Sequence record: LC768500.1
Length of the DNA: 64,000 nt
Direction: 5' to 3' (one strand)
Part shown: positions 196 to 24,296 of the stretch, piece by piece
Layout of the letters: every line of letters starts with the position of its first letter
Position numbering within the stretch: position 1 is the stretch's first letter
Notes under the pieces: model-generated
What the model was told of the DNA's origin: nothing
The model's database searches: none
Seen by the model: the letters and a program-made list of their open reading frames with translations, nothing else
Program-made: the position numbers and the translations under genes

Positions 196-234
196 ATGGC
201 TAAAATTTATTTCACTTACTCTTCTATTGTATAG
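196..234 (+). pseudogene. Dead 5' remnant of thymidine kinase (MAKIYFTYSSIV*)
   Basis: RBS-like TAAGGTT at 180-186, ATG 196; 7 of first 10 aa and 26/33 nt match the tdk start at 1228 (MAKVFFTFSSM). Confidence 0.8.
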
Positions 235-259
235 TAGAAACGCTTATGGGGAAATAGAA

Positions 260-1228
260 ATGCCGAAAATTAGTGGCTACAAAGAACATCCGGTAATAAA
301 AAACCTTTTCATCCATCCTACGGAAGATAATCACGTCCTGTATGTTAGGAAGAAAAAAGTATCTCGGATAAAGACCCATGTCGGTAAACGCGGATATGTG
401 ATTTTTACTATGTGGTTAAATGGGAAATCCAAGGGTTTTCGCTTCCACAAATTGAAAGCTGAAACGTATCTCAAGAAACCCAGTTCAGACCACACCCTAG
501 TTGTCAATCATAAGGACCATGTTAAGATCAATAACGATCTCGATAACCTAGAATGGGGGACTCAGAAAGAGGATGTCGATCATTCATTAAATATCCGTCA
601 AAAACTTTTTCCCCTCTATCGGATAATGGATTTGACTACGGGGAGATGGTGTACGGCCGGCAGTCGTAAAGGGGTGATAGAAATGCTAGCTTGCACCCAC
701 CGACAACTCTCTAACCATATTAAAGACCCTCGCTATCCATTGCTCTTCAAGTGGGAGGTAACAAGGAGTTCCACTTGGAATCTTTCAAAAGATGACGTGG
801 GTAGATATAACCCACGAGAGCTTCTTCCTTATGTGGTAGAAAAGAATGGTGTCGTTTTTTACCTGGCGACATTAGCTGAAGTTGGTGAATTGACAAAGAT
901 TACTAAATACACGATTACAGTTGGTTTAAAAAATCAGCCGGTTCTGCATGCCAAGGGATTCAGTGTTCGGTTCATTAATTCCTATGAAGAATGGATGAAA
1001 ACTGTTATTGAGAAATCTTATATTGATACCATGTTGAATAGAAGTAAAGGAAATAAAAAACAGATTGAGGTAATAAACACTCTTACGAAGGAAAAAACCA
1101 TGCTGAACGGAATTATAGAGTTAATGGAGTTGACTAATTATTCACGATCTACCATCGACCGGGCAATGAAAAGTATGCGTGAAGACGGATGGGTGACTTT
1201 CAAAAATCTAAAGATAAGGTTTATATAA
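260..1228 (+). CDS. Free-standing HNH homing endonuclease
   Basis: VVNHKDHVKINNDLDNLEW HNH motif; the track's GTG at 146 lies inside a terminator hairpin, so ATG 260 (MPKISGY) is preferred; stop overlaps tdk start (TAATG). Confidence 0.85.
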   Translation: MPKISGYKEHPVIKNLFIHPTEDNHVLYVRKKKVSRIKTHVGKRGYVIFTMWLNGKSKGFRFHKLKAETYLKKPSSDHTLVVNHKDHVKINNDLDNLEWGTQKEDVDHSLNIRQKLFPLYRIMDLTTGRWCTAGSRKGVIEMLACTHRQLSNHIKDPRYPLLFKWEVTRSSTWNLSKDDVGRYNPRELLPYVVEKNGVVFYLATLAEVGELTKITKYTITVGLKNQPVLHAKGFSVRFINSYEEWMKTVIEKSYIDTMLNRSKGNKKQIEVINTLTKEKTMLNGIIELMELTNYSRSTIDRAMKSMREDGWVTFKNLKIRFI

Positions 1229-1815
1229 TGGCTAAGGTATTTTTCACTTTCTCTTCGATGAATTCTGGGAAGACCACTGGATTGTTGCAATCGGCTTACA
1301 ATTACGTTGAAAGAGGAATGTCCGTCTTACTTCTTAAACCGAAACTCGATAATAGAGAAGGGGACGATCCGATAATTAAATCAAGAATAGGATTAGAAAG
1401 CGAGTGTGTTTTTATTCCTGATGACGGGGATGAATTAGTCGACCTCATTCATAATAATAAAGGTGTTTCGGCGATATTCATCGACGAGGTTCAGTTCGTT
1501 CCAGTGCGAGTGCTTAGCGCGATCATGGTAATGTGTGACACCATGGATATTCCTCTTCTCTGCTACGGTCTCCGTAACGCTTATGATGGTAAGGGATTCC
1601 CGGGATCTGATTTCTTATTACGTCACGCTGATAAACTGGTTGAATGCAAATCGATTTGTTGGTGTGGTAAAAAGGCGACCCACAACATGATGGTTGTCGA
1701 TGGGAAAGTGGTAAGGGAAACCACGTCAGGGGGAAATATGGTTGTCGGCGGTAATGAACTGTATCACGCCGTTTGCAGGTATCATTTCTTCGAAGGCAAA
1801 TACAAAGAAGATTAA
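1228..1815 (+). CDS. tdk: Thymidine kinase
   Basis: SMNSGKTT P-loop, FIDEVQF, CYGLR, Zn-binding CWCG...CRYH; start ATG 1228 with TAAGG RBS inside the HNH gene end. Confidence 0.95.
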   Translation: MAKVFFTFSSMNSGKTTGLLQSAYNYVERGMSVLLLKPKLDNREGDDPIIKSRIGLESECVFIPDDGDELVDLIHNNKGVSAIFIDEVQFVPVRVLSAIMVMCDTMDIPLLCYGLRNAYDGKGFPGSDFLLRHADKLVECKSICWCGKKATHNMMVVDGKVVRETTSGGNMVVGGNELYHAVCRYHFFEGKYKED

Positions 1816-1833
1816 CTTATATTTATTTTGAGA

Positions 1834-1853
1834 TCTACATTATCATGGTGTAA
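1834..1853 (+). promoter_or_regulatory. Putative early promoter
   Basis: TCTACATTATCATGGTGTAA, 17/20 identical to 58145-58164, which contains the phiKZ early-type TATATTAC. Confidence 0.55.
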
Positions 1854-1893
1854 GCATAGTACGTTTTTATTTTCCTTTTTAGGAGTTAACATC

Positions 1894-2388
1894 ATGATGA
1901 GCCAACTTGTAAATATTCTGAGTGAACACAGATCGGCGTTTATTTGGCCTTCCAACATCCTTCAGTTAGAAGATGAATACTTCTATCTCTCGGTCAAGAT
2001 TACGGAGAGTGGTGTGGTCAAATGTATCTTCCGGAACAAGCTCACCAAAGACGTCCGTAAGTTCGACTTCTCTGATAGCATTTTTGATAAAGAGGGGTTA
2101 TGGGATTACTTCAATGCGATCGGCAAAGAAGTCTACGCCATTGGGATTGACTACGGTAAAGGGTTCCAGCTGAAGATGTTGTTTGAGCCGATTAAGGCGA
2201 TGATCACCGATAAGGCACATAAGCCTTATAATGGACATCTTCCAAGAGACGTAAGAGCACCACTATTTTCCCCGGTTAACGCCCACAGCATTTATCTCGA
2301 CGAAAACGGCGAAGTCACACTCGATGGCTTCGAATGGGCTTCTCGTGGATTGCAATTAAAAATCATCGAAGAGCTCTTAATTAACTAA
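1894..2388 (+). CDS. Hypothetical protein
   Basis: AGGAG RBS then ATG 1894; open to TAA 2388. Confidence 0.7.
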   Translation: MMSQLVNILSEHRSAFIWPSNILQLEDEYFYLSVKITESGVVKCIFRNKLTKDVRKFDFSDSIFDKEGLWDYFNAIGKEVYAIGIDYGKGFQLKMLFEPIKAMITDKAHKPYNGHLPRDVRAPLFSPVNAHSIYLDENGEVTLDGFEWASRGLQLKIIEELLIN

Positions 2389-2431
2389 TTAATGTTATGC
2401 TAATTAGCTCATCACTGTAAAGAGGATTAAG

Positions 2432-2908
2432 ATGAAAAACCTGCTCGATTTAGTGCTCAAATTTTTCATTGGGCTTAACCCAGGCCTGGCCGTACTGATG
2501 GAAGGTGGTTCGATCGTCAATGTGGTTGAAAAACCAGAAATCGATCGTTACGCCGGTGATATCATGCGTCCGGACGGCACAACCAAGCTTCTGTCGGTAA
2601 CCTGGAAACCGGGTACATTTAAAGGCGTGTTCGGCCTCGATCCAGCCTTTGCTCCCGTCACGCAGGATGAAGCAGGCACCACTGAAGGTATCTTCCTGAA
2701 GACCGACGGCACGCCTTACTTTGCGTTGACGGCTGAAAATGCTACCGAAGCCAAAATCGAAGAAATCCTCGGATATGCTTTCGAAGAAGGTACGGTCGCA
2801 GTAGACACCGAAACCAAAAAGGTCAGCTTCGCAACGTCTACCATCGTTGCTGAAATCGATCTGGTCGTTATCGAAGCGGCTCCGGTGGCCGACGGCCAAC
2901 TGCCGTAA
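2432..2908 (+). CDS. Hypothetical protein (acidic, high-expression codon bias)
   Basis: GAGGA RBS, C-ending codon bias, followed by a hairpin. Confidence 0.75.
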   Translation: MKNLLDLVLKFFIGLNPGLAVLMEGGSIVNVVEKPEIDRYAGDIMRPDGTTKLLSVTWKPGTFKGVFGLDPAFAPVTQDEAGTTEGIFLKTDGTPYFALTAENATEAKIEEILGYAFEEGTVAVDTETKKVSFATSTIVAEIDLVVIEAAPVADGQLP

Positions 2909-2916
2909 TAAGTAAC

Positions 2917-2950
2917 CTACTCCTACGTCCTTAACGGGGCGTAGGAGTAG
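2917..2950. terminator. Intergenic hairpin, CTCCTAC family
   Basis: CTACTCCTACGTCC / GGGCGTAGGAGTAG arms directly after stop codon. Confidence 0.7.
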
Positions 2951-3013
2951 TTCGTTAATTATAACTGACTTTTTTAATATATAACCACCAACGTTCATTT
3001 AGGACATAACACC

Positions 3014-3220
3014 ATGTTGTATGACGCAATTGAAGTTTGTTTTATCGTAATCTCCATTCTTTCCTTTATCTGGGTAATGAAGAAGAAAGGAACTGGGGCG
3101 ATGTTAATTATTGCGTTTTCTATTGTTGTCGTGGCAGGATGTCGTTATCAAGATAACGCCGATACCGAACAAGCTTTAGAGCATCCAAAATATACCAAAT
3201 CTAACTGCGGCTGTTTATAA
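3014..3220 (+). CDS. Small membrane protein / possible lipoprotein
   Basis: AGGA RBS; two hydrophobic segments; internal MKKK...VVAG-C lipobox-like signal. Confidence 0.6.
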   Translation: MLYDAIEVCFIVISILSFIWVMKKKGTGAMLIIAFSIVVVAGCRYQDNADTEQALEHPKYTKSNCGCL

Positions 3221-3232
3221 GAGGAACTGATT

Positions 3233-3526
3233 ATGTTTTATGATTTAGTCAAGGTTTGCAAGGAACTCGTATTTTCTCATACCTTCAACGAAAGCAATCC
3301 TGACAAGGGTTACTTCGATACCTGGAAGTGGCGTAAGTTACTCATTAACGTGGTAAGCGTAACGTATCACACCCCTAAGCTTGCCGCGCTCAGTCCGCTC
3401 TTAAAGGCTATTTCCAGTAAGCAAGACGGGCTGACAATTTCCCCACAAACCGACAGCCAAGGACGGGTCACGCGAATTACGGTGACACACAATAATAAAT
3501 CAGTGGGTTTCAGATTCAAACGTTAA
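3233..3526 (+). CDS. Hypothetical protein
   Basis: GAGGA RBS, tight operon spacing. Confidence 0.65.
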   Translation: MFYDLVKVCKELVFSHTFNESNPDKGYFDTWKWRKLLINVVSVTYHTPKLAALSPLLKAISSKQDGLTISPQTDSQGRVTRITVTHNNKSVGFRFKR

Positions 3527-3539
3527 AGGAATAATCGTC

Positions 3540-4112
3540 ATGGGATACATCGAGCTTAAACACGGAACTGATAAAGACTACGTTCCCTACCGCACCAATG
3601 ACATCTACGAATTAGATGAAGATATCACCGTCTTAACCGACGATACTCGGGTTATCGACGAAAATAAAGAAACCTACTTTTTTGTGCCAGGGGTGGACGC
3701 AGAAAACATCAAGGTTAAGGTCGGTGACGTGAACCAGTTTTTACTTTTCTGGCCCGTGAAGGAAGGGGTTGAAATCAGACTTGTTTCGTTTGGGACTGGT
3801 AGAAAAACCACAAAAGTGGTTGGGTTCCTCATGACCGAGTTTCATCACCATTCCATTTACGCCAGCGTGTTCTCGTCCCTGCTGCATCGAGAATCGAAAA
3901 TGAATTTCCGCAGTAATAAACTGGCTACAGGGATCATGTGTAAATTACTTCACCGGTGCCTCAAAAGCTTTAAGCTCAAGCATCCTTCGCTCGGACGTAT
4001 CTATCTCGATATCGTATCTGATAACGGTGTTATTAAGTACGTTAACCAACACGGTAATTTTAGTGGATTGTATTATCGATTCAATCCAGGATTTAAACCA
4101 GAATTACGCTAG
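3540..4112 (+). CDS. Hypothetical protein
   Basis: AAGGA RBS, operon spacing. Confidence 0.7.
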   Translation: MGYIELKHGTDKDYVPYRTNDIYELDEDITVLTDDTRVIDENKETYFFVPGVDAENIKVKVGDVNQFLLFWPVKEGVEIRLVSFGTGRKTTKVVGFLMTEFHHHSIYASVFSSLLHRESKMNFRSNKLATGIMCKLLHRCLKSFKLKHPSLGRIYLDIVSDNGVIKYVNQHGNFSGLYYRFNPGFKPELR

Positions 4113-4120
4113 GAAAAAAT

Positions 4121-4663
4121 ATGTCAGATATTATCGCTTACAATAAAGCGCGGCTGGTTAATGGGTTTGAACTCGTTTGCCATCATCGCACTATTCACCT
4201 GTTCGAAGATGTTTTCGAGAAGGGCAGGTACAATAAAGAGTTCGTTGCTAAATTTGACGAACTGGAAGTATTTTTGGATGTTCGTTACGCGATCATCTTA
4301 GGGAGAAAAGATAAAGATCTCACACTGCATCTAATTCGCAGTAATGCAGCTCGTGAGATCGTCAGCTGGGATTATCATTACAAGTCCAATGATAACCGAT
4401 CTGACAATTGGAAGATGGAGGCCATCGGGCAGTTTATCATCAGTGACATGGAGCAGGGGTATTTCTCCCTCTCCCCTGGTTATCGAAGTGATATCAACGA
4501 CCTACTGACTTATATCGGTGGTCAAGAGAAAGAGGTCAATATTCGCAATACAGAAATCAGCGTCAGTGAGGGTAAATTTAACTTCGTAGGCCGTAACGGA
4601 CAGATCGGCCCGGGTTTGTTATCAGAGACCAAACCCGTTAACCTCATTAAGTTGTGGGCATAA
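4121..4663 (+). CDS. Hypothetical protein
   Basis: AGGA RBS; ends at a 17-bp hairpin. Confidence 0.7.
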   Translation: MSDIIAYNKARLVNGFELVCHHRTIHLFEDVFEKGRYNKEFVAKFDELEVFLDVRYAIILGRKDKDLTLHLIRSNAAREIVSWDYHYKSNDNRSDNWKMEAIGQFIISDMEQGYFSLSPGYRSDINDLLTYIGGQEKEVNIRNTEISVSEGKFNFVGRNGQIGPGLLSETKPVNLIKLWA

Positions 4664-4702
4664 TAATAACTCCTACTCCCGATAAGGGAGTAGGAGTTAT
4701 TA
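4664..4702. terminator. Perfect 17-bp hairpin terminator
   Basis: TAATAACTCCTACTCCC-gataa-GGGAGTAGGAGTTATTA followed by T-tract. Confidence 0.85.
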
Positions 4703-4732
4703 ACTTTTTTGTTTTTAGAATAGGAGGGTGTA

Positions 4733-5986
4733 GTGCACGATGATTTTTATGACCGCCATGACCACGTTTTCGTTTTCGTGCAAAAATTTGATTTAGCTCA
4801 TCCTGAACTAATAGACCGAACCGTAGAGGAGAAATTCGAAATTTATACTAAGGACTATCCCGATTATGATTGTTGGGCTCAACTGGTTTATTATTTCAAG
4901 GACGGCGGGGTGTTTTCACCAGAAGGGGTGAGACTTTCAATGAGGGGGATGGTGGTTTCTCCGTTGAAAAGACTCAACCGACCCATCCACGAAAGAATAA
5001 ACGAAATGGTGTTCAGGGAAGGGGCGAAAAAACAGTCAGGTTATCCTAGGATAATGATCGGCGATTTAGGACTTTCAATGCACAGACTGATCGCATCTAC
5101 TTTCATAAAAAGACCCGATCATTTAAAGCTTATCCCATTTATGCTTTTACACGTCAATCATAAAAATGGGATTAAGAACGATTACAGACCTAATAACTTA
5201 GAATGGACTACTCCTAAGGAAAACGCGATCCATAGCGCCATGACGGGACTCACGCCACAGGGACTAGCCCACACAAAAACAATATCGGTACTCGGGTTCT
5301 TCTCTTTACCAGGAAAGTGGTTCGGGAAAACCATTTCATTTAGTGGAAATAAAGAGATTAATTCCGCAGAACTGTTTTCTCAAACAATGATACACGAAAA
5401 GGTTAGGGAAGGTGGGTTGTACAAGGGTTTTAAGTGGATTAGCGTATCTGAAGAAGAGTATAACAACCATCCACACGGTTTAGAAGATCCAGAATTTAAG
5501 AGATTTATCGACGAAGGGGGAAACACTTACCTTGATGAAAGAACTAATTTTCTTATAGGGACAGTGATTCACGAATGCGCTTATAAAGGGCTGCAATTTA
5601 TTATTTTCGGTGAAACAATGATCGAGCGTAACGGATTCCCGGCTAATCGTTTAATGGAGTTTTATAAATCCAAAGAATCGGATTCTTATTTATCAAAGGG
5701 ATGTCTTTTTGTGAGGGGGGATCTGTCCGACCTTGAAAAATTTCCGCGTGGAATACCCGATGAGCTGGTAACCATTTTATCTAGGGAGAGGGGAGATAAG
5801 TTCTATCCCGTGATCGCCAATAAAGATGGAGAGGATAAGTTATTTGCATCTAAAGAAGAGTTATCCGCGAACGGGTTTATTTATAAAGAGGTTAAGAAAA
5901 ATATACGGGGAGAGACGGGAAGTCATAGGGGTCACGCATTCAGATGGGCGGAACGATTATCGGGGTCGTTCCAACCGTCAGACTAG
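4733..5986 (+). CDS. Free-standing HNH homing endonuclease
   Basis: HRLIASTF...HVNHKNGIKNDYRPNNLEWTTPKENAIH; GGGAGG RBS before GTG. Confidence 0.85.
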   Translation: MHDDFYDRHDHVFVFVQKFDLAHPELIDRTVEEKFEIYTKDYPDYDCWAQLVYYFKDGGVFSPEGVRLSMRGMVVSPLKRLNRPIHERINEMVFREGAKKQSGYPRIMIGDLGLSMHRLIASTFIKRPDHLKLIPFMLLHVNHKNGIKNDYRPNNLEWTTPKENAIHSAMTGLTPQGLAHTKTISVLGFFSLPGKWFGKTISFSGNKEINSAELFSQTMIHEKVREGGLYKGFKWISVSEEEYNNHPHGLEDPEFKRFIDEGGNTYLDERTNFLIGTVIHECAYKGLQFIIFGETMIERNGFPANRLMEFYKSKESDSYLSKGCLFVRGDLSDLEKFPRGIPDELVTILSRERGDKFYPVIANKDGEDKLFASKEELSANGFIYKEVKKNIRGETGSHRGHAFRWAERLSGSFQPSD

Positions 5987-6078: not shown

Positions 6079-6086
6079 ACTTTATA

Positions 6087-6116
6087 ATAACTACCGGGAG
6101 ATTTCCCGGTAGTTAT
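6087..6116. terminator. Bidirectional terminator, TAACTACCG family
   Basis: ATAACTACCGGGA-gatt-TCCCGGTAGTTAT between convergent genes. Confidence 0.8.
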
Positions 6117-6119
6117 CAG

Positions 6120-8174
6120 TCAAAATAAATCCATGACGTTAGAGAGATATTTATTTAACGGTAATGTTTCTGATTCATTATTCATGATATCAAATGACTC
6201 ATTGCCGTCTATAACACGTAATGCTGGGTTATTAAGAGAACTCTGAGCTAATAATTGCTCGACGTTCTCTTTAGACCACTGCATGATATCTACGCTTCTG
6301 GTCATGATGTTTATTTCATTTCCAGTATCGAGTTCAATTAACCAGAAGAAACAAGGGGCGTCCTGCCCCTGTCTAAAGATCCTCGCCTTGGTTTGTTTCA
6401 TTTCGTAATCGCGCCAAGGGGCGTCCATCATAATCTCCTGATTTGCAACGACCATGTGCGCCCCTTCCTTTAGGGTCTTAAAGGTCGTAACCCCAGGATT
6501 ATACGTCGGATCATCAGTGAATATACTAATGAGTTTCTCTTTACTTAATTCTGCGTCCCCGTAAACGAGTAAGGGTTTTAATCCCTCTTCCTTAAGATAA
6601 GTGTTAACTTCATTAAGGACGTCGACATAAGAAGTAAAGATTAATGTTTTCTTTTCTACCTGATTAATAAGCCCTGGAAGATTAGCATGCCTTACTACTG
6701 ATCTGACCGCATCAATCCTCGCTTTACCCAAGACATTCCCTAACGCCTCACCTTTGATCTTTAATCCCACATATTTTACTGCTGATTTAATATTTCTGAA
6801 TTGTTTCAGTTTATCTCCTCGTAAGCGGGCTTCAATATCGATCTCGACGTTCTTAGCATATTGAGAGTCTTCGGAGTCGGTGAAGTTATTATATCCTTGT
6901 GTTCTGAACTTATTAACGATCTGACGATAACGAACCAATCTTCCTAATTGGGATGGATCGTCTTTTACATAATGTTCGTAATCTTCCAGAACGTGATTAA
7001 AGAAATTGAGGAACGTTGGCATGTTTGTTTCGTAAAACTTAACACGCTGTTGTATGTAAGCTAACATGTCAAGTCGTATTGCTTTTAGAGTGAATCTTTC
7101 TCCGCCGGGTACGACGACTGGAAGCATGACTACGTCAGGTTCTTCATCTAGCCCCACAACGCTGTCTATGACGTATCTCGTCTTTCCTAAGCGATGGGCG
7201 AGCAATTCATTGAGTTTATCTCTGGACAAGCCATAGGACTTCAGGAAGCGTTCTCGGGCATTGCCTTTAAAGAATGGATCGATCGCACAGAACATCGGAT
7301 ATGTTTCTTTCCCGGAATTTTTTAACAAGGTTCCGCTCATAGGCAGAGCGTCTTTAAAGTCGAAGTGGTCTACAACGGAAATCAAGTTTTGCGTTTGTTT
7401 AGAGGAAAGTTCGTTAAAGTTATGGCTTTCATCGATAACAAGGTCGACCCCACCGTTGCCAGCAAACTCAAAAATGCGTTCCACCGCTTTAAAGAAATCC
7501 GGTGATCGGGTGGCTTCGATATGGAATACGTAATATTCGGCGTCTCTATCCAACGGTCTATTTTGTCGAGTGGTCCAGTATTTGGGGGGAGTGACGAATA
7601 CCTTTTCTTCAATGTGAAATTTCCAAACTGTATTTAGCACAACGTCAGGAGCAATAATGATATGTTTCTTATTCCCCGTCAGACGCGTCCACATTAAGGC
7701 CGTAGGCGTTTTTCCTGAACCAGGTTTAGCGTCTAATAGCAATCCCTTTAGGTGATAAGATGACTTAATTCCTTTATACATTTCTAAGAACCCCATCTGA
7801 GTAGGATGTGGTTTTATTTTAAACTGCTTTAAAAAAGAAGCTTTGTCTATCGGATAAGCTGTAGGGGTAACGGTATCCTTTATCCAAGTATCCGTTCTGA
7901 GTTTAATTTGGAGTTCGTTAAGGTTCTTGCGACTACTCCAGGTATTTCTTGACTGGAGTATCTTTGTTATTAGATGATCCAACTCCAATAAGAAAAAGTT
8001 ATCCGTAACGAACTTATTGGACCCAACACGTCTGAACATATAACGACCTGGCGTGCTTGTACCATACGCGGTCTGTATGTCGTCATTAAAGTTACGGAAG
8101 TTAACATGATTGATTTCCGTAATAGTCGGTCCTTGTTTAACATCAGGCCCAAAGATATAGTTTAACATCACCAA
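6120..8174 (-). CDS. SF2 (SNF2/DEAD-like) helicase
   Basis: DAKPGSGKT motif I, VIDESH motif II, SGT motif III, QTKARIFRQGQ motif VI; ATG at 8168 is an alternative start. Confidence 0.85.
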   Translation of the reverse strand: MVMLNYIFGPDVKQGPTITEINHVNFRNFNDDIQTAYGTSTPGRYMFRRVGSNKFVTDNFFLLELDHLITKILQSRNTWSSRKNLNELQIKLRTDTWIKDTVTPTAYPIDKASFLKQFKIKPHPTQMGFLEMYKGIKSSYHLKGLLLDAKPGSGKTPTALMWTRLTGNKKHIIIAPDVVLNTVWKFHIEEKVFVTPPKYWTTRQNRPLDRDAEYYVFHIEATRSPDFFKAVERIFEFAGNGGVDLVIDESHNFNELSSKQTQNLISVVDHFDFKDALPMSGTLLKNSGKETYPMFCAIDPFFKGNARERFLKSYGLSRDKLNELLAHRLGKTRYVIDSVVGLDEEPDVVMLPVVVPGGERFTLKAIRLDMLAYIQQRVKFYETNMPTFLNFFNHVLEDYEHYVKDDPSQLGRLVRYRQIVNKFRTQGYNNFTDSEDSQYAKNVEIDIEARLRGDKLKQFRNIKSAVKYVGLKIKGEALGNVLGKARIDAVRSVVRHANLPGLINQVEKKTLIFTSYVDVLNEVNTYLKEEGLKPLLVYGDAELSKEKLISIFTDDPTYNPGVTTFKTLKEGAHMVVANQEIMMDAPWRDYEMKQTKARIFRQGQDAPCFFWLIELDTGNEINIMTRSVDIMQWSKENVEQLLAQSSLNNPALRVIDGNESFDIMNNESETLPLNKYLSNVMDLF

Positions 8175-14449: not shown

Positions 14450-15904
14450 ATGAGTACCCCTTTTCAATTTTTACAAAATGTAAAAAGCAGCCCGATGGTT
14501 CACATCGGTTTTAACTATAGTCCGCTTTTTGATATGATCAATGGCCGGTTCTTTAAGGGATACGATGAACAGTATTACCTGAACGGTGGGATCATGGACA
14601 ACAACGCCACAGTAGGAGGAAGCAACACGCAGAAAACCGGACAGTTGGTATTTGCCTGCCGTCGTTTCCTGCAACGTTTCCCTATGGGGGTAATCATCTA
14701 TGTTGACAGCGAGTCCACGTTAGACATTGGACGATTGGCTGATGCTGTCGATGCTGATTTCGGTATCCCTGGGTACTTCTACGATGAGATCTTCGACAAA
14801 CGGTTCATCTATAAAACGAGTAAAGATGAATTCGATGGCACCGCTTTCCACAACCTCATCAAAGACGCTTACAACAACTTCAAGGACAACAAAGATAACC
14901 CGGACATGTATGTCCAAACTCCGTTCCTGGATAAAGAAAATAAACGGATCAAATGTATTGCGCCGATCATGGTTATCTGTGATTCTTTAAGCGACCTTCG
15001 TTTCACCGAGGCTTCCGCCAAATTCACAGAAGGTGATGTGGACGAGGGTGGTAAGAAACGCACTCGTGATATGGAGTTCGGTAACCTCAAACGCGTTGTC
15101 TTTGAAGACTCCAGCAACCTGGGTGGCATCGCCGGCCTCAGACTGTGGTGGGTGGGTCAGATCGCCGACATGATTAACATGGACGGTAAGCCGATGGAGA
15201 AACAATCCACCTTCATCCGCCCAGGTAAGAAGATCGCCAAGTGTCCTAAAGCGATTCTCCAGCTCCCGAGCATCGGTTATGAGATCATTAAAGGCAGTGG
15301 GTTGAAAGTCGATCAAGAATGGATGTACCCGAATCCATTCGGTCGCGATGTTGTTATCGACGCCGACGCCAGAGAAAACCCGGATTTATTACTTTACAGC
15401 TTTACAATGTATCGTAATAAAGGCGGGAGTTCCGGACTACAATGTTCTTTCATCGGTTCTCAGTCAGACGGGATCCAGGAAGGGCTGAGCATGTATCACA
15501 CCATTAAAACCGACGGTTATTTCGGTTTAAGTGTGGGCAGCAAGGTCAGTCACGCTTGTGACCTCATGCCGGACCTTAAAGTTGGCCGAACCACCATTCG
15601 TAAAATCGTCAATGAGAACCACCAATTCTACAGGGCGATCACTATCTGTTACCAGATGTGGTTCATGCAGAACTATTGGATGCGTTTGGATCACAAATAC
15701 CGCATGACGCCAGCCGAATTATATGCGAAGGTGGCTGAAGCCGGTTACGACTGGACAGAATTATTGGAAAACTCCGTCGATTACTGGCACCTCAACCCGG
15801 ACATCAAGAAACATACTCTGACCACCATGCAGCTGTTGGCTGTTGCGTGTGGAGAAGGTTCTATTCCGTGGGCTTCTAATCGTTTATTAAAGCAAGCGGC
15901 ATAA
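14450..15904 (+). CDS. uvsX: UvsX/RecA-like recombinase
   Basis: Atypical Walker A GGSNTQKT (T4 UvsX also lacks the G before K), YVDSES, Walker B VICDSLS, YRNKGGSSG; gp152-like synteny. Confidence 0.8.
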   Translation: MSTPFQFLQNVKSSPMVHIGFNYSPLFDMINGRFFKGYDEQYYLNGGIMDNNATVGGSNTQKTGQLVFACRRFLQRFPMGVIIYVDSESTLDIGRLADAVDADFGIPGYFYDEIFDKRFIYKTSKDEFDGTAFHNLIKDAYNNFKDNKDNPDMYVQTPFLDKENKRIKCIAPIMVICDSLSDLRFTEASAKFTEGDVDEGGKKRTRDMEFGNLKRVVFEDSSNLGGIAGLRLWWVGQIADMINMDGKPMEKQSTFIRPGKKIAKCPKAILQLPSIGYEIIKGSGLKVDQEWMYPNPFGRDVVIDADARENPDLLLYSFTMYRNKGGSSGLQCSFIGSQSDGIQEGLSMYHTIKTDGYFGLSVGSKVSHACDLMPDLKVGRTTIRKIVNENHQFYRAITICYQMWFMQNYWMRLDHKYRMTPAELYAKVAEAGYDWTELLENSVDYWHLNPDIKKHTLTTMQLLAVACGEGSIPWASNRLLKQAA

Positions 15905-17009: not shown

Positions 17010-17011
17010 CG

Positions 17012-17440: not shown

Positions 17441-17449
17441 AGGATTCTC

Positions 17450-18148: not shown

Positions 18149-18150
18149 CA

Positions 18151-18175: not shown

Positions 18176-18179
18176 CATT

Positions 18180-18674
18180 TTATACTGATGGCTTAACAAT
18201 TTCACCTTCAAAGTCAACTGATATGGCGCCCATATCAAGTTCTTTGTCTTTGATCCTGCCGATATCGGCGAGTTGTGAAAGTGGAACATTAGGATCCAGG
18301 AAGGTAGGCTGACCTGGCGCGAAACTAGGAAGTTTTAATTCACCGGTGCTTAATGACTGAAGTGCGTCGACCATTTGTTTGAATGAAACTTTGTTGTCTT
18401 CATTCTCTTTTTTCTTCGCGCGTTCTTTTCTGTCATCTCGAACTGATTTTTCCAACTGAGTTAACAAAGAAGAAATCGCTTCCAGTAATTTAGGGTCACC
18501 GGGTTTATTGGAGTAAGCCATAGAGGCGATATCCAGTATCATACTACGGTGTGACTGCACCGCCTGAATGAGCTGAGTCTGTTCAATATCTTCGTCAGTC
18601 GGATGGAGAGCAGCATTGATTGCAGACATCACCTTTTCTATCCGTATCTGAACGGGTGCTTTTTCGTCCATCAT
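18180..18674 (-). CDS. Hypothetical helical protein
   Basis: 164-aa ORF with charged coiled-coil segment. Confidence 0.7.
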   Translation of the reverse strand: MMDEKAPVQIRIEKVMSAINAALHPTDEDIEQTQLIQAVQSHRSMILDIASMAYSNKPGDPKLLEAISSLLTQLEKSVRDDRKERAKKKENEDNKVSFKQMVDALQSLSTGELKLPSFAPGQPTFLDPNVPLSQLADIGRIKDKELDMGAISVDFEGEIVKPSV

Positions 18675-18744
18675 AATTTTTTAAACCTACATTATAGAAG
18701 TAGTGGAATAAATAAAATGTTTTTAGCCCTTAGGGAACGTTAAC

Positions 18745-19338
18745 ATGCTTAAGAAATTTTTCAACTGGCTGGGGTTTAAAAGCAAATCGATAGGTAAGGC
18801 AGATACCCCGTTAGACGTCATAGAACGCATCAGGGAAGGCTTTCTTCCTAAGAACATGCGAAGCTTAGATAAACCGTTGTCTCTTCTATACGATTTAATT
18901 AAGACGCTTCCTGAGCTGGAATACAATGATTATAAAAAGTTACAGCGTAACACAGTTAAGGTTAGATCGCTGAGTTCGTTAGACATGTTCCATCTTTTAA
19001 AATCATCGGTTTTATCCAGCCAAGCGGAATATATGGATGCGGTGCAACGTTTAAATAGCGTCGCTACCGAAAGGCCCTTTCTTCATTGGTACTCTGGAGA
19101 GGAAAGCGCTATCGCACTTAACGAATTGTTTTTAAAACTTCTACCTAAAATAATCCTTTTCCACCAACTTAACAACCAGAGTACATTTCAACAGAATGAA
19201 GATATAACCGGATTTACGAATATCGAGATCCGGTTCTTTAGTTCTGTTCAGCTAAGGTATATGGTCGAAGACTATATCAGCATGTTGGAAGTGCTACTCT
19301 CACATCATTTTGGAGGCTCGGTTGAAGAAGCCCACTAA
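18745..19338 (+). CDS. Hypothetical protein
   Basis: AGGGA RBS, 197-aa ORF. Confidence 0.7.
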   Translation: MLKKFFNWLGFKSKSIGKADTPLDVIERIREGFLPKNMRSLDKPLSLLYDLIKTLPELEYNDYKKLQRNTVKVRSLSSLDMFHLLKSSVLSSQAEYMDAVQRLNSVATERPFLHWYSGEESAIALNELFLKLLPKIILFHQLNNQSTFQQNEDITGFTNIEIRFFSSVQLRYMVEDYISMLEVLLSHHFGGSVEEAH

Positions 19339-19738
19339 ACATCCCGTAGAACTTGAAATCTCTAAGTTATCCAATAACTCATGCGCTGACAGTGATTTAG
19401 CTGACGAGCCCGCAAGGTTATTCCGTAAGCTTTTACGTAAGCTTAACATGAATGTCGACAAACTCTGTTTGCTTATGAACGAGTATGTTAAGTGGACCGT
19501 GACGGGAGAGGACGAGGCTGAAATCAGAAAAAGACGTTCTTACACAATGGGGAACATTAAAGACACTTACTTTAAGAACCCCACACTGACTTTCAGCAAA
19601 CTTATCGAGGGATTAAGTATCCTGAGAATGAGCAAAGTCGAGGTCATTCTCAGAGTCTATGATAAGAAAGGCAATATGACCGAGGTCTCAGAAACTGTGA
19701 GAATCATCAGCAGCCCCGACGATAAAAAAGACGACTAA
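19322..19738 (+). CDS. Conserved jumbo-phage hypothetical protein
   Basis: GGAGG RBS before TTG 19322 (track start 19310); GNIK...LTFSKLIEGLSIL motif. Confidence 0.6.
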   Translation: MKKPTKHPVELEISKLSNNSCADSDLADEPARLFRKLLRKLNMNVDKLCLLMNEYVKWTVTGEDEAEIRKRRSYTMGNIKDTYFKNPTLTFSKLIEGLSILRMSKVEVILRVYDKKGNMTEVSETVRIISSPDDKKDD

Positions 19739-19750
19739 TCTTATAGCCCG

Positions 19751-19779
19751 AATACTCCTACCTTAGGGTAGGAGTATTT
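19751..19779. terminator. Hairpin, CTCCTAC family
   Basis: AATACTCCCTACC / GGTAGGAGTATT arms with one bulge. Confidence 0.65.
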
Positions 19780-19810
19780 AACCCTATTATTTATTTTTTA
19801 GGATATCGTC

Positions 19811-20929
19811 ATGGATTTAAATCCCAGTAGTATTTTTGACAACATCGATTTTAATTCTCCCGTATCCGACATTAAAAAAGAGGCGGATACTAAACTCGCC
19901 GATTTAAAAGGTAGCGTCCTTAACCCTATCAGCTCTAGTACCGCAAGGATTAAAGACGGCATCGCCCTGTTAAACAACATGGACACTAAGTTTAACCAAG
20001 CGGTAACAGGATTTAAATCTGACGTCATGGGTGTCGCTAACAGTATTATCGGCACCCTTCAAGATGGATACTTCACCATTAATGAATTAGTGAGTATGGT
20101 CATAGGGGCTTACACCAGCCTGACTAATCTCGCTAACATTGGTGATGATCTCAAATCCATACTGGGGACTAACGTCAGTAATATCGACGGGTTCTTAGAT
20201 CGGTTCAGCAACATCTTCGTCAGTAGCATCAACTCGAAGGTAAGAGCGAGCGGGTACAAATCCAATACGGTTAGTAGCGGTGGCGAATTCCTCACCATCA
20301 CTCAGAGTAATAATAATCCGTCTTCCCAAGCCATCATCGCAGCGTTGGGCAAGCTGTCAGTAGGCGATCTTCAGGATTCTTACGATAGTTCAGTTTCCAC
20401 CGCGGTATACAGCACCCTCTTAGCACAAGCCGTTTCCAGTGGATTGACTTCTTCCTACGCCGATCTTTATAACAAGATCACGGATAAAACCGAAGCCGAT
20501 AAGGCAGTTGTCTCGGCAATAGGTAACGCCCTTGCTAACGGCGATCTGACTTCAATTGAAAATCTCTTAGCGTTGATTACTAACAGCGGAGCGAAACTCA
20601 CTATTGGTTCCACCTATCCCAATGCTGCCGAAACCCTGTTAAGTAAATATAAACCTCTGGATTCTCAAGATGTTTCAGATTACCCGGCTATCTCCGAACA
20701 GCTGAAAACTATTTTGGTTCTCTTCGGGGGAGTGAATTGGTGGAAGGTTTACACCGCATTAGGTTGGGTTCCTAATTTACTTATCGCTTCTAAGCTCTCA
20801 AGTAGTGTCAGAGATATTTGGATGGAAGACGCCGAGCTCTTTGCATTAGTGGCTTGCAAAGGTTTCTTTAAAGAGATGACCGCACGTAAAGCCTTCTTAA
20901 CCAACTTTCCACAAACCCCGATAAGTTAA
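19811..20929 (+). CDS. Putative virion structural protein
   Basis: TAGGA RBS; Ser/Asn-rich helical 372-aa ORF; call is from context. Confidence 0.6.
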   Translation: MDLNPSSIFDNIDFNSPVSDIKKEADTKLADLKGSVLNPISSSTARIKDGIALLNNMDTKFNQAVTGFKSDVMGVANSIIGTLQDGYFTINELVSMVIGAYTSLTNLANIGDDLKSILGTNVSNIDGFLDRFSNIFVSSINSKVRASGYKSNTVSSGGEFLTITQSNNNPSSQAIIAALGKLSVGDLQDSYDSSVSTAVYSTLLAQAVSSGLTSSYADLYNKITDKTEADKAVVSAIGNALANGDLTSIENLLALITNSGAKLTIGSTYPNAAETLLSKYKPLDSQDVSDYPAISEQLKTILVLFGGVNWWKVYTALGWVPNLLIASKLSSSVRDIWMEDAELFALVACKGFFKEMTARKAFLTNFPQTPIS

Positions 20930-20964
20930 ATAACTACCGTCTCCCTTTGGGAGACGGTAGTTAT
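20930..20964. terminator. Bidirectional terminator, TAACTACCG family
   Basis: ATAACTACCGTCTCCC-ttt-GGGAGACGGTAGTTAT (16 bp). Confidence 0.85.
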
Positions 20965-20980
20965 AATTAGATCATTTTTT

Positions 20981-21004
20981 TTATCTTGGGAACTGCTGAT
21001 GGAA
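20981..21004 (-). pseudogene. Dead 3' remnant (FHQQFPR*) of the 22146-24296 gene
   Basis: Minus strand ttc cat cag cag ttc cca aga taa vs the live end tgg cac caa caa ttt ccg agg taa at 22146-22169. Confidence 0.8.
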
Positions 21005-21005
21005 A

Positions 21006-22058
21006 TCACTCTCGCTCAATTCTTTTAATAAAATAATTCTTATACATTCCATTGTTCCGATAAGACCGATTCAGGTTAGCCGAGTTGGTTCCGAAATTGG
21101 TTAACTCTATTGTTCCGGTTAGTCTGGTGACGCACTTAGTGCGTTTATGAGTCAATTCCCATATCACTCTGTCAGACCTATTCGACTTCCTCCCGGTTCT
21201 ATCGTAATTATAATCTCTTATTGCATTTATCAAATTCTGCTCGGGATCTTTATAGTGTTTGGTGTACTCTTCCTTGGTTACCTCTTCCCATTTACATCCC
21301 TTATAGGTTTTAGCTTTACCTGTCCTAATGGCGTGAAGATTACGATTATCCAATCCAAATTTAGCGCATTGTTCCTTGCCGCAAACGTATATCACTCTTT
21401 TCTTGAATCCTGGGATATCAATCACAGTACCTTTCATGGGAATGACGAAAGGATGCGACAAGTGCTTATGGGATACAAGGAGGTTATTCTCTTTGGCATG
21501 TTGCTTGTTCTGTTGTGGCGTGGTCCATTCTAATGAATTTACGTCGTTATCATCCTTTCCCTTTAAGTGGTTAACTTCAAGTTCAGAATAATCGTAAAGA
21601 TTGAGCTCATCAGGTTTTGGAATCCAGGACGACGCAACGATCCTGTGCACCATCATTACGTATCCTGATTTCATATATACTTTATAACCAAAATGGCTAA
21701 ACGTTCCTTTAACCATTTTGTACGTTCTTAAATTAAAAATTCTACCTCTGTTACTCACCCAAATATAAGTAAAAGATGTTGATGTTTTCTTATTAATATT
21801 GAGGTTCTTCGGGCTGTACGGAAAATAACTTGCCGGAACCCAATACTCTGATCTGGGATCTTCTTTTAATAATTTTGTTAACTTGGCATAATAAGCTTTC
21901 TTACGTTCTTCGTGCGATAAAAGATTCAATAAAGCGTTAGCCTTTTTTCCCATCGCATCAATAATAGATTTATATTCTTTAACAAATAACGGGAGATTTC
22001 CTCTAGCTATTTCATCCCATTCTTCTTCAGTTCTTATTCGCGGCGGTCTGATTTTCAT
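21006..22058 (-). CDS. Free-standing HNH homing endonuclease
   Basis: VSNRGRI, HRIVASSW, EVNHLKGKDDNDVNSLEWTTPQQNKQH; GGAG RBS favours ATG 22058 over 22091. Confidence 0.85.
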   Translation of the reverse strand: MKIRPPRIRTEEEWDEIARGNLPLFVKEYKSIIDAMGKKANALLNLLSHEERKKAYYAKLTKLLKEDPRSEYWVPASYFPYSPKNLNINKKTSTSFTYIWVSNRGRIFNLRTYKMVKGTFSHFGYKVYMKSGYVMMVHRIVASSWIPKPDELNLYDYSELEVNHLKGKDDNDVNSLEWTTPQQNKQHAKENNLLVSHKHLSHPFVIPMKGTVIDIPGFKKRVIYVCGKEQCAKFGLDNRNLHAIRTGKAKTYKGCKWEEVTKEEYTKHYKDPEQNLINAIRDYNYDRTGRKSNRSDRVIWELTHKRTKCVTRLTGTIELTNFGTNSANLNRSYRNNGMYKNYFIKRIERE

Positions 22059-22145
22059 GGTTACACTGCTCCAGATTACATTATTTATCATATAATAAGA
22101 AGCAGTGGTTTTCCATTAACAATACAAACCCTTGATATTAAAGGG

Positions 22146-24296
22146 TTACCTCGGAAATTGTTGGTGCCAGACGCGTCCAATATCTCCGATAATCGAGTCG
22201 TTCACAATACCCGCGATATTACCCGCAGAAACAGACTGACTTATCGAGTTCTTAGCCGTGGTTAATCTCCTTGATAATTTGTTCCATCTTAAAACGGTAT
22301 CAAGGTAATCCGACCCGGATAATCTCGTAATGTAGTCGGTATATTTCCCGGTATCGATCAACATCCTGTTAACCGCTTCAGCAGGGTTCGTCATATCGAG
22401 TAAGGAGACCGCCCTGGAGATAGGAAGCGAGACATGTTTTTCTAAATCGACAAAGGAGATATCAACAGTACAGTTCAACGGTTTACGGTCTTTCTTCCAA
22501 CCACCAACACCTTGTCCAAAGGAGATCGTTGCGGAATCGACCATACACGTTCTCATGATGGCACGACTCTTAGAAAAGATCTTACACAGGAAGGGTGATG
22601 TGTGAGCTGAAGGACCTGCGCTTAACGGCAGAATGATCGGCATCAATAATGATAGCGGAACCCAGATATTCATCAGTTGCGAATAAGGGTGTGCGTAAGT
22701 CGCCTCAAAATAGAAACGATAAGTTTCTTTATGTAGGTTTGCTGACGATTCGGCCCAGTGATCAGGAATGTTGATATAAGAGTTGTTCATTAACGCCATG
22801 GGAATGTTAGCGATCCCTATGGAGTTAATACCACCCATAGCAACTTCTTTCAAACCACTAATAACGCCGTCAACAACACCAACGCCTGTCATTCCTCCGG
22901 CTAAATCAAAACGAAGATCGTTAGCCGCTTTTGACATACTGTTGAATTTATCCGCTACGGCTGACTGGGTGGCAGAGTTAGAGAAGTTATCCGTTACCTC
23001 ACCTAAATGTTCTACTCGCCAAGTAATAGCATCTAGACCGCCGTACCAAGATGTTTTAACGAGATCAGCAACTTGTCCCGCCCACGAAGAGTCAGTGACG
23101 TTATCCGTAGCCGCAGTTAATCTCGCTGTAACGGATTCCAGACTCTCCGAAGCAGAGGAGAACTCACCTTGCCCGGAAGAGGCCGTGGTGGTCGTTCCAC
23201 TTCCGTCAGTATTCATTGACGAAGCATCCGATGGTGCGGCAGTCGCCGTCCCTGTCCCGGTCGTATCCGTGGTAATTGCTTGCGGGAGTATGCTCGTGTA
23301 AGCATCTTGATCGGTAAATGCCGAGGCTTTCTCCGGGTAATACCCTTCTTCTTTAGCACGATATTTACCGGTGGTGTTCAATTCCTTTTGCATCAACTCA
23401 TTGACACCATACTGTTTCCCAGAGAGAGTTTCGGCATTGAACTGGATGTTTTTGGCAATATCTGCCATCGCATCGTATTTTTCCTGAGCGGAGTTAATGA
23501 TGCGTTCGTTGAGCTTCTCAATTTCGGATAAGAACTTCCGATATTTTCTCGTCCCTAGTGAGACCAGTCGAATAACGTCTATTGTTCCGTCGTCGTTAAT
23601 ACAGTCCGGAAATAATGCGTTTAATCGCGCTATTTCATTATAGTAATTCCCGGCTTCTTCTGGGTCAACACCATTGATAGGCGCTCCTGGCGGTTTCTTA
23701 ATAGCAAGAACGGGTTTTATAAATCCTTGAGCTGTAGCAACGTCGTTTAAGAAGTTATTAGCTGCAGTCAGGTACATCCCCATGCTAGGCTTCACGTAAT
23801 AATACTGATTACGCGGAGTATCCATGAGGAAGTCTAAGAACGTCATCCCGATGCTGATCAGCTGGATGGGCCAGAATGCCAAAGTCCCTAACCCCTGACC
23901 GAAATAAAACGCCAGGCTGGGGCTACGGCCTTTATTAGCCTGAATAGCTGCTACTGGGTCGAACATGCGTTCTAAGAAAGTCAGTATCCCTGTGAATTCT
24001 GGAACACCAACAGTGATGGTAAGAAGAGACGCATTATCGTCATAGATCTTCTTATACTGTGTTCCCATCCCGCCGTATGAGGAAGACAAAAATTGGGAAT
24101 AACGGGGGTCTGTCGCCGGCCCAAATTGAGGGACTGGGTTGATGTACCGGTTATCCCCAATCGCACTACTGAAAAAGTTGTAATAAAGGTCTTTGTTAAG
24201 GTGATCTCGGATAGTGACGTTATCTATCCCAGTGCACATTAATTTGAAAGACTTAGCGATGAGATTTCTATCTCGTAAAGATATGCTGTTAGCCAC
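22146..24296 (-). CDS. Tail/baseplate-associated virion protein (phiKZ gp182-like position)
   Basis: 716 aa, directly downstream of the giant tail lysin gene; Thr/Ser-rich central linker. Confidence 0.65.
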   Translation of the reverse strand: MANSISLRDRNLIAKSFKLMCTGIDNVTIRDHLNKDLYYNFFSSAIGDNRYINPVPQFGPATDPRYSQFLSSSYGGMGTQYKKIYDDNASLLTITVGVPEFTGILTFLERMFDPVAAIQANKGRSPSLAFYFGQGLGTLAFWPIQLISIGMTFLDFLMDTPRNQYYYVKPSMGMYLTAANNFLNDVATAQGFIKPVLAIKKPPGAPINGVDPEEAGNYYNEIARLNALFPDCINDDGTIDVIRLVSLGTRKYRKFLSEIEKLNERIINSAQEKYDAMADIAKNIQFNAETLSGKQYGVNELMQKELNTTGKYRAKEEGYYPEKASAFTDQDAYTSILPQAITTDTTGTGTATAAPSDASSMNTDGSGTTTTASSGQGEFSSASESLESVTARLTAATDNVTDSSWAGQVADLVKTSWYGGLDAITWRVEHLGEVTDNFSNSATQSAVADKFNSMSKAANDLRFDLAGGMTGVGVVDGVISGLKEVAMGGINSIGIANIPMALMNNSYINIPDHWAESSANLHKETYRFYFEATYAHPYSQLMNIWVPLSLLMPIILPLSAGPSAHTSPFLCKIFSKSRAIMRTCMVDSATISFGQGVGGWKKDRKPLNCTVDISFVDLEKHVSLPISRAVSLLDMTNPAEAVNRMLIDTGKYTDYITRLSGSDYLDTVLRWNKLSRRLTTAKNSISQSVSAGNIAGIVNDSIIGDIGRVWHQQFPR

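Follow-up and report, generated by a model that had tools for sequence, protein, structure and literature searches.

The closest described counterparts of the elements reported here, free-standing HNH endonuclease genes that lie just inside the ends of conserved genes of Klebsiella phage phiKp_32, are found in fungal mitochondria. Mobile open reading frames (mORFs) with a foreign C-terminus have been described there for atp6, atp9, cox2 and nad3 of Glomus, atp9 of Rhizopus and cox2 of Mortierella (PMC3630166), and atp6 of Allomyces macrogynus is the original case as far as it is cited in that work. The layout has been attributed to an endonuclease-driven mobile open reading frame (ORF): expression comes from the hybrid gene, while the old C-terminus stays downstream as a dead sequence, near-identical to that of the sister species (PMC3630166). 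The mitochondrial genome of Sclerotinia borealis was considered as a further precedent and was not used, since its truncated atp6 and atp9 copies are not tied to an endonuclease-borne terminus. For phages, a review of T4 describes free-standing endonuclease genes that are intergenic or that split genes (PMC2988022), and Barth and colleagues have reported that "fragments of essential cargo" adjoin homing endonuclease genes (HEGs) at recombination boundaries, and they proposed these fragments to be recombination substrates (PMC10055350).

The DNA analysed here (the window, 64,000 nucleotides) is identical (100%) to positions 186001-250000 of the phiKp_32 record, LC768500.1; coordinates refer to the window unless they are marked as record positions. 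With a genome of 251 kb, this member of the Miami-like group is a jumbo phage, and the annotation of its relatives ties it to EL, OBP, RisingSun and pTD1, phages of the nucleus-forming type whose RNA polymerase genes are split. It carries eight HNH genes. The five that are free of introns all lie just inside a gene end, together with a stub of the native end and a replaced, live end, whereas the three located in the middle of genes all adjoin a group I intron recognised by Rfam (51-59 bits).

Five close relatives available in GenBank were compared, namely Miami, YC1, KPN8, BUCTxx100 and Raoultella phage VB_ZK_P1, which together with phiKp_32 make six genomes. HNH gene content varies among them, which makes it possible to compare occupied sites with empty ones, the latter being intact. 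The genome-wide comparison was made between record positions 1-250000 of phiKp_32 and complete YC1, which is 94-97% identical to phiKp_32 and yet has no HNH gene, against eight HNH genes and four group I introns in phiKp_32.

The 5' end of the thymidine kinase gene

In Miami and YC1, which do not have the first of these endonuclease genes (HNH1), the thymidine kinase gene (tk) has one start only, ATGGCTAAAATTTATTTCTACTTC, behind a terminator and a ribosome-binding site (RBS) identical to those of the window; in Miami, both are annotated directly 5' of the uninterrupted tk. In phiKp_32 these signals (135-185, plus strand), consisting of the terminator hairpin at 135-156 with its T-run and the native tk RBS AAGG at 182-185, are both retained, and what follows them is a dead tk 5' stub (196-234, plus strand; ATGGCTAAAATTTATTTCACTTACTCTTCTATTGTATAG), a 12-codon mini-ORF that reads MAKIYFTYSSIV and has two stops after it. 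Its positions 196-227 correspond by homology to nucleotides 1-32 of native tk, and in BLAST alignments these 32 nucleotides of the Miami and YC1 genes align twice, to 196-227 and to 1228 onward.

The gene between the two copies, HNH1 (260-1228, plus strand), is free-standing and encodes a protein of 322 amino acids that matches Pfam HNH_3 (E 8.7e-6) and PHROG 59 (E 3e-20) and shows a weak helix-turn-helix (HTH) match at its C-terminus. The live tk (1228-1815, plus strand; Pfam TK, E 1.7e-34) starts at 1228 with ATGGCTAAGGTATTTTTCACTTTC (MAKVFFTFSS). Its start overlaps the HNH1 stop in the sequence TAATG (1226-1230), and the live tk has a Shine-Dalgarno (SD)-like TAAGGT of its own (1215-1220), inside the 3' end of HNH1. 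The mini-ORF of the stub, which keeps the native RBS, terminates 25 nucleotides 5' of the HNH1 start. Because of this retained RBS, the TAATG overlap and the internal SD-like TAAGGT, expression of HNH1 and tk may be coupled to the former tk signals.

The first ~370 nucleotides of the live gene (1228 to ~1600) form a foreign tract with 79-85% identity to Miami and YC1, beyond which identity reaches 97-98.5%. HNH1 is found in four of the six genomes, all independently sequenced and all with the same stub, and in KPN8, BUCTxx100 and VB_ZK_P1 the diverged tk tract extends further than in phiKp_32. This variation in tract ends among the HNH1-carrying genomes fits what would be predicted from co-conversion.

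The 3' end of a structural gene

The same layout is observed at the 3' end of a gene for a structural protein of 716 amino acids. In Miami, YC1, KPN8 and BUCTxx100, which are free of the endonuclease gene HNH3, this gene ends in GRLFHQQFPR and a stop, adjoining a native terminator hairpin (20934-20960 in the window, annotated as a terminator in Miami) placed between it and the convergent gene 19811-20929. In phiKp_32 this hairpin now adjoins a dead 3' stub (20981-21004, minus strand), TTCCATCAGCAGTTCCCAAGATAA, which encodes FHQQFPR and a stop and is out of frame with the HNH3 stop. The live gene (22146-24296, minus strand) ends in TGGCACCAACAATTTCCGAGGTAA (22146-22169; WHQQFPR and a stop, preceded by GRV), compared with TTCCACCAACAATTCCCAAGATAA for the native Miami end, and 25 nucleotides of Miami (L005 19043-19067) align to the stub and to the live copy alike. 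Differences to the relatives are clustered in the last 46 nucleotides of the live gene only: positions 22146-22191 hold 14 substitutions, five of them amino-acid-changing, so that the protein ends in IIGDIGRVWHQQFPR as against the native ILNDVGRLFHQQFPR.

HNH3 itself (21006-22058, minus strand) is a free-standing gene for a protein of 350 amino acids. Pfam gave no significant match for this protein, and its assignment as an HNH endonuclease comes from PHROG 59 (E 4e-21), from a phmmer match to HNH2, the endonuclease of the next locus (E 8e-19), and from the alignment of its NH...N...LEW..T motif. It is preceded by a cassette leader (22059-22145, minus strand) with a terminator-like hairpin right after the live stop (22147-22127) and the promoter-like motif CTTATTATATGATAAATAATG. 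Only phiKp_32 and VB_ZK_P1 carry HNH3 (two of six genomes), and their copies are 75-85% identical at the nucleotide level, compared with 92-95% for the flanks. The same type of stub is present in both of these independently sequenced genomes; in VB_ZK_P1 the recoded tract covers ~27 nucleotides, and the stub, of 15 nucleotides (CAATTTCCAAGATAA), provides the final codons and the stop of the HNH3 ORF.

The 3' end of a RapA/SNF2-like helicase gene

At the third locus, the native remnant is vestigial and the foreign tract very long. A native bidirectional terminator with a 17-bp stem (4664-4702, plus strand) is common to ORF 4121-4663 and, in the relatives, to the convergent gene for a RapA/SNF2-like helicase. 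It is followed in phiKp_32 by the stop and two to three codons of the helicase 3' end (4715-4724, minus strand; reverse complement CCTATTCTAA, native CTTTTCTAA), a stub defined by its breakpoint, given that homology with all five relatives ends ~10 nucleotides inside the end of the helicase ORF. The endonuclease gene HNH2 (4733-5986, plus strand), present in phiKp_32 only (one of six genomes), is free-standing, runs antisense to the helicase and encodes a protein of 417 amino acids (Pfam HNH_3, E 1.1e-5; PHROG 59, E 1.5e-20). A cassette-borne hairpin that the relatives do not have (6090-6113) separates it from the stop of the live helicase gene (6120-8174, minus strand; 684 amino acids), whose recoded end is GATTTATTTTGA (DLF and a stop; NVMDLF at the end of the protein).

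The foreign tract of the helicase runs from 6120 to ~7810, that is, 1.69 kb or 563 of the 684 codons, with 63-74% nucleotide identity to all five relatives, and past ~7810 identity rises sharply to 94-100%. When 50,697 phage records were searched by distant blastn for the HNH2 cassette together with the foreign tract of the helicase, no donor closer than the Miami group (~69%) was obtained. Scans of IMG/VR likewise gave no donor, the best match of the foreign helicase protein having 45% amino-acid identity and the best matches of HNH2 34-64%, confined to the motif.

HNH genes of the whole genome

Two further intron-free HNH genes lie outside the window, each absent from all five relatives (one of six genomes). 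The first, at record 68254-69264, runs antisense to the gene of a DnaB-like helicase, with a stub encoding VPDFDFAG and a stop beside the native terminator and a live end encoding QPDFDFMG and a stop; a 36-nucleotide stretch of YC1 aligns twice at this locus. The other, at record 179248-180243, is accompanied by a 72-nucleotide stub (record 179165-179236; FVRLCGSSHFTKRKAEGNVIQKR and a stop), whose 24 codons equal the native end of YC1 in protein sequence, and by a live end, AVRLFGEPHFTRKRAVGNVIMK and a stop, which differs from it. For the gene concerned (record 180233-180610), 72 nucleotides of HNH-free relative sequence align to both copies. Across the five loci, the breakpoints fall 10 to 72 nucleotides inside the host ORFs, stop codons or frame shifts close off the stubs, and three of the five HNH genes run antisense to their target.

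The mid-gene HNH genes are found at record 14558-15577 and record 28759-30132, adjoining group I introns of 58.6 and 51.3 bits, respectively, and in the RNA polymerase beta gene of the window. The latter is part of an insertion relative to Miami (36302-37736, plus strand), in which the HNH ORF (36360-37412; Pfam HNH_3 and NUMOD1) stands ahead of the ribozyme core (37354-37690, plus strand; Rfam RF00028, 51.9 bits). A fourth group I intron, without an ORF, is located in the RNA polymerase beta-2 gene (32613-32943, plus strand; RF00028, 37.5 bits, E 3.3e-6, which is under the gathering score), within an insertion relative to Miami at 32606-32985. At the site of this ORF-less intron, VB_ZK_P1 has an additional ORF, VBZKP1_270.

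Rfam scans of window positions 1-38000 (E<=1) returned only the two introns in the RNA polymerase genes and none within 1-22300, and no RF00028 match was obtained at any of the five terminal HNH loci, a negative limited to the ribozyme classes held in Rfam. The four introns found elsewhere in phiKp_32 by the same scans serve as positive controls. A hidden intron was rejected on these grounds, and stop codons and own start codons separate the intron-free HNH genes from the host ORFs. An intein is excluded by stops, intergenic spacers and opposite-strand orientation, and an arrangement as genes in pieces was discarded because the stub repeats residues that are already within the full-length live gene.

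All five intron-free proteins match the HNH endonuclease family PHROG 59 (E 1e-20 to 1e-24). Three of them (HNH1, HNH2 and the product of the record 68254 gene) match Pfam HNH_3 above its gathering threshold, and the proteins of the three intron-associated genes match it more weakly, below that threshold; some of the HNH proteins also match NUMOD1 or I-HmuI-like modules, the HTH and NUMOD matches being weak. In an alignment of all eight proteins, the His, Leu and Glu of the NH...N...LEW motif are invariant. They are mutually only 20-35% identical, and therefore the genes are not recent copies of one gene.

A sequence-only reading of the window had placed each of two HNH genes (260-1228 and 21006-22058) between two versions of one gene end, a dead stub on one side and a live copy of diverged sequence on the other. 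The relatives agree with it, as their single terminus matches the stub: HNH-free Miami, YC1 and others carry the stub-type terminus and no duplicate, a comparison that had been set beforehand as a refutation test. The gene at 4733-5986, named there as a possible third case, does share the layout, its stub being vestigial and its foreign tract very long. The claim that no splicing elements flank these genes is in line with the Rfam results, which give none at the loci and four introns elsewhere, and the recurrence at 5' and 3' ends in one genome, first noticed within the window, extends to all five intron-free HNH genes.

A homologue of HNH3 in a second genus

The nearest relative of HNH3 beyond the Miami group is encoded by the EL-like Pseudomonas phage HHBS8_1 (36.7% identity). 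Its gene directly follows the orthologue of the same structural gene, and EL and HHBS47_1 do not have it. Here, a cassette of 1069 nucleotides substitutes 42 nucleotides of intergenic DNA in a clean insertion from which a stub is absent. Since this homologue is intergenic and stub-free, the stub is optional for the HNH3 endonuclease lineage. Nevertheless, the HNH-bearing allele shows a 17-nucleotide recoded patch located 20-37 nucleotides before the stop (ADLARILSRPLAR versus ADLLRLATRPLAR, each followed by the stop), which falls in the region that is also recoded in phiKp_32. These alignments point to the 3' end of the structural gene as the site of the HNH3-family target.

The HNH3 cassettes of phiKp_32 and HHBS8_1 also have a TATTATATGGTAAATAA-like leader motif in common. 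This AT-rich motif, found 5' of the HNH3-family genes, reads CTTATTATATGATAAATAATG in the window (22078-22098, minus strand) and CCTATTATATGGTAAATAAATAGG in HHBS8_1 (L010 3966-3990), and it could be a candidate for a cassette-borne promoter of the phage polymerase. A scan for sigma-70 promoters gave counts no better than those of shuffled sequence, and, as these phages use their own RNA polymerases, no promoter claim is drawn from it. In HHBS8_1 the structural-gene orthologue shifts frame at L010 ~3485 and is annotated as two coding sequences, as opposed to the single gene of EL and HHBS47_1, and this change is either a sequencing error or a genuine frameshift.

Other insertions and observations

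A TnpB-like element of the IS200/IS605 OrfB type was found in VB_ZK_P1 (L006 3737-5047), at a site equivalent to 3236/3237 of the window. It is inserted after base 5 (ATGTT|) of the homologue of window ORF 3233-3526, and the split gene resumes at a new start, ATGCGACAT (MRHFYDLL, compared with MFYDLV). It is thus a further mobile element that hits the first codons of a gene and provides a new start. In phiKp_32, two tnpB genes are annotated (record 119897-121033 and 147036-148172). Another insertion polymorphism, with no endonuclease linked to it, is the additional gene for 258 amino acids at record 42281-43127, absent in YC1, whose product weakly matches a phiKZ internal head protein (Pfam E 9e-5, under threshold). 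Finally, the core genes of BUCTxx100, deposited as a Stenotrophomonas phage, and of the Raoultella phage VB_ZK_P1 are 92-97% identical to those of the Klebsiella phages compared here, and for this reason the host label of BUCTxx100 merits checking.

Origin of the replaced gene ends

Chance similarity would fit a helicase stub of only ~10 nucleotides and a structural-gene stub that agrees with the live copy at just 16 of 24 nucleotides. An ungapped scan of 30-mers from gene termini against their flanks, within the genome, did not single this latter stub out, which is explained by the recoding of the live copy. At the residue level the result is different: when gene ends of the window, 48 of them 5' and 50 of them 3', were compared by their terminal residues with the 2.5-kb outward flanks, tk (7/10) and the structural gene (7/8) were the only outliers of these ~100 termini, all the others reaching at most 5. 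Moreover, the breakpoints against the five relatives coincide exactly with the stubs, and in the HNH-free relatives no duplicated terminus was found, the single one matching the stub. An assembly artefact, in turn, does not agree with the recurrence of the stubs across independently sequenced genomes. Chance or artefact is already refuted for four of the five loci and, as a general explanation, has next to no probability. Scarcely more probable, and for the most part refuted, is a local tandem duplication of the gene end within the lineage, one copy of which would then have diverged, with an HNH gene landing between the two. It would account for the two terminus copies that flank each HNH gene, but the live copy is within a long tract of 63-85% identity that ends abruptly, which divergence in place of a few duplicated codons could not yield, and no relative has the duplication without the HNH gene.

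It is likely, instead, that these are free-standing homing endonuclease genes of the HNH (I-HmuI/NUMOD) type that entered by break-induced gene conversion from diverged relatives. This account builds on the anatomy of the loci, the insertion polymorphism, the one-sided and sharp-ended foreign tracts, the absence of introns and the intact HNH motifs, all of which are observed directly. During co-infection, the endonuclease would nick or cut the allele that is free of the HNH gene, at a site close to where a conserved gene ends. On the gene side, homologous repair from the donor would copy an allele tract of variable length, the intergenic signals and the HNH gene; on the far side, where the donor would offer no homology, the first junction would be illegitimate and would fall a few codons inside the end of the recipient gene, a step suggested by the one-sided tracts and the duplicated target. 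The native terminus would thereby be left as a non-functional stub adjoining the native RBS or terminator. Later, the stub and its flank could take the part of the second homology arm whenever the gene spreads between close relatives by ordinary intronless homing, which fits the presence of HNH1 with the same stub in four genomes. Resistance to cleavage is presumed both for the live terminus, which is diverged, and for the stub, which is truncated or mutated. The foreign tracts begin exactly at the HNH gene, and the stub-side flanks keep the identity to relatives that is typical of the genome.

The sequence-only reading had taken the mobile unit to be an HNH gene plus a recoded terminus. That a live replacement end travels with the gene is upheld; it is not a short, tailored synonymous recoding, though, but, as judged from the alignments, a tract of a foreign allele, whose length is 27-46 nucleotides in the structural gene, ~370 nucleotides in tk and 1.69 kb in the helicase. 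With this variable length and its amino-acid changes, the tract looks like the product of co-conversion from a diverged donor.

Several points weigh against entry by gene conversion as set out above. Cleavage by the HNH proteins, their expression and the homing of their genes are predictions from sequence. Many I-HmuI-type HNH enzymes nick DNA instead of cutting it, and the repair route may consequently involve replication-fork collapse and not a simple double-strand break. The genomes of these phages are mosaic at many places, to which ordinary recombination adds background noise. Neither the 50,697 phage records nor IMG/VR yielded a donor genome with the foreign allele of the helicase or of tk. 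The ~10-nucleotide helicase stub is insignificant by itself. In addition, the stubs differ from the native alleles of the sequenced relatives at ~5 of 32 positions in tk and at 3 of 24 in the structural gene, and the exact source alleles of both therefore lie outside the six genomes.

A more ambitious and less probable possibility is that the HNH gene and its recoded terminus have evolved into a mobile unit complete in itself, which would be a third solution next to introns and inteins and in which the terminus is selected to immunise and the stub has a purpose as a homology arm or leader ORF. It agrees with the layout of all five intron-free HNH genes and the use of introns by all three mid-gene ones, with the own hairpin or terminator and the conserved leader motif that the cassettes bring, with the tk stub that keeps its RBS and ends 25 nucleotides before HNH1, which is coupled to tk by TAATG, with the HNH3 ORF of VB_ZK_P1 that uses the stop codon of the stub, and with the short, partly synonymous tract carried in the structural gene. 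Conversely, tracts that range from 27 nucleotides to 1.69 kb and change amino acids fit passive co-conversion; the HNH3 homologue of HHBS8_1 is intergenic and free of a stub; the stubs, of ~10 to 72 nucleotides, share no design; and nothing indicates their upkeep by selection. Of the "general strategy" suggested in the sequence-only reading, the recurrence holds over the whole genome (five of five); the stub is not obligatory. Extended to nucleus-forming jumbo phages at large, this possibility would make terminus replacement a regular, selected third route into coding sequence, with introns used in the middle of genes and a carried 5' or 3' end with its own leader and terminator at gene ends, the stub acting as homology arm or translational leader, and the same enzymes perhaps competing between co-infecting phages; it is a speculative extension, and we give it no greater credence.

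It is improbable, on the other hand, that the HNH genes are passive cargo or domesticated weapons against competitors, with the tracts and stubs produced by ordinary recombination, illegitimate or homologous, among mosaic jumbo phages and not by cleavage through these enzymes at the loci. Mosaicism does occur at many HNH-free places, nuclease genes have been reported generally at recombination boundaries (PMC10055350), and an intron-encoded HNH protein of the nucleus-forming phage PhiPA3 is reported to act in competition between co-infecting phages (PMC11620839). Yet all five intron-free HNH genes stand exactly at the boundary between native and foreign sequence inside a gene terminus, and HNH3-family genes of different genera adjoin the same gene, in which a patch at the same spot is recoded, which suggests target-specific action. 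Interference and homing are, besides, compatible with each other.

Consequences

Within this one genome a positional rule is followed, by which an HNH gene at a gene end goes with a replacement terminus and an HNH gene in mid-gene goes with an intron, and the rule predicts five target sites. If the preferred account of entry by gene conversion is right, HEGs import foreign alleles of core genes, here of tk, a virion protein and two helicases, the longest tract being up to 1.7 kb with ~70% identity, and such HEG-borne import would bear on the exchange of essential genes among jumbo phages. In phylogenetic work, the affected genes would give misleading trees if their foreign tracts were left unmasked. 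For annotation, short dead gene ends beside HNH genes and chimeric ends are to be expected and are not to be called as genes.

Comparison with known systems

The sequence-only reading had considered the arrangement possibly undescribed. This does not hold in view of the mobile ORFs of fungal mitochondria (PMC3630166) and the fragments near phage HEGs (PMC10055350). As in mORFs, the endonuclease ORF lies within the terminal part of a conserved gene with no intron; the gene core is joined in frame to a diverged terminus gained by horizontal transfer, expression of the hybrid copy being predicted here; and the displaced native terminus stands beyond the endonuclease ORF and matches close relatives, with several genes affected per genome. 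The differences concern the family and the setting, since mORFs are of the LAGLIDADG or GIY-YIG type and reside in an organelle genome, whereas those of phiKp_32 are of the HNH/NUMOD type in a lytic jumbo phage. Furthermore, mORFs have been described at 3' ends only, and phiKp_32 has a 5' version (tk) that needs its own start codon and RBS; mORFs are often in phase with the host gene, whereas in phiKp_32 each HNH gene forms a cistron of its own with a separate start, three of the five being antisense. Judged from their sequences, the phiKp_32 cassettes would thus work like mORFs while standing outside those element lineages.

Among phage systems, the seg and mob genes of T4 are similar in that free-standing HNH or GIY-YIG genes adjoin the conserved gene they target and show presence/absence polymorphism (PMC2988022), as well as in the variable co-conversion tracts in the adjacent gene and the reliance on neighbouring expression signals (PMC2988022). 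Duplicated dead termini are, in contrast, outside the T4 description, and cleavage sites have been mapped for several T4 enzymes, those of the phiKp_32 HNH proteins being predicted. The HEG-islands of ICP1 and other phages resemble these loci in having HEGs at the edges of exchanged segments near essential genes (PMC10055350, PMC10448857). They differ in that the fragments are mentioned there in passing and mostly for T5orf172 and other families, and the two papers contain neither a terminus-specific stub with a live replacement nor a split between introns and termini.

With genes in pieces, such as nrdA/mobE of Aeh1 and gene 39/60 with mobA of T4, the phiKp_32 loci share a free-standing endonuclease gene in a coding region with no intron or intein; in those systems both halves are needed and reassemble as protein, whereas the live gene of phiKp_32 is complete and the stub redundant. 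The HNH proteins of the introns of phiKp_32 itself, and gp210 of PhiPA3, are of the same HNH/NUMOD family and have the same kind of essential-gene target. For intron HNH genes, inserted in mid-gene, a ribozyme restores the mRNA, as opposed to the five terminal HNH genes of phiKp_32, which are without a ribozyme and where the gene is restored at the DNA level by a new end.

In the open-access literature we found no description of an HNH version in a jumbo phage, of a version at a 5' end with a start and RBS of its own, of antisense cassettes with their own hairpins, or of a division of HNH genes between introns and termini in one genome. The principle of the layout is already known from fungal mitochondria; what is new in phiKp_32 is the HNH family, the phage setting, the 5' version and the intron-versus-terminus split, and these loci link phage biology to a mechanism that has so far been documented mainly in fungal mitochondria.

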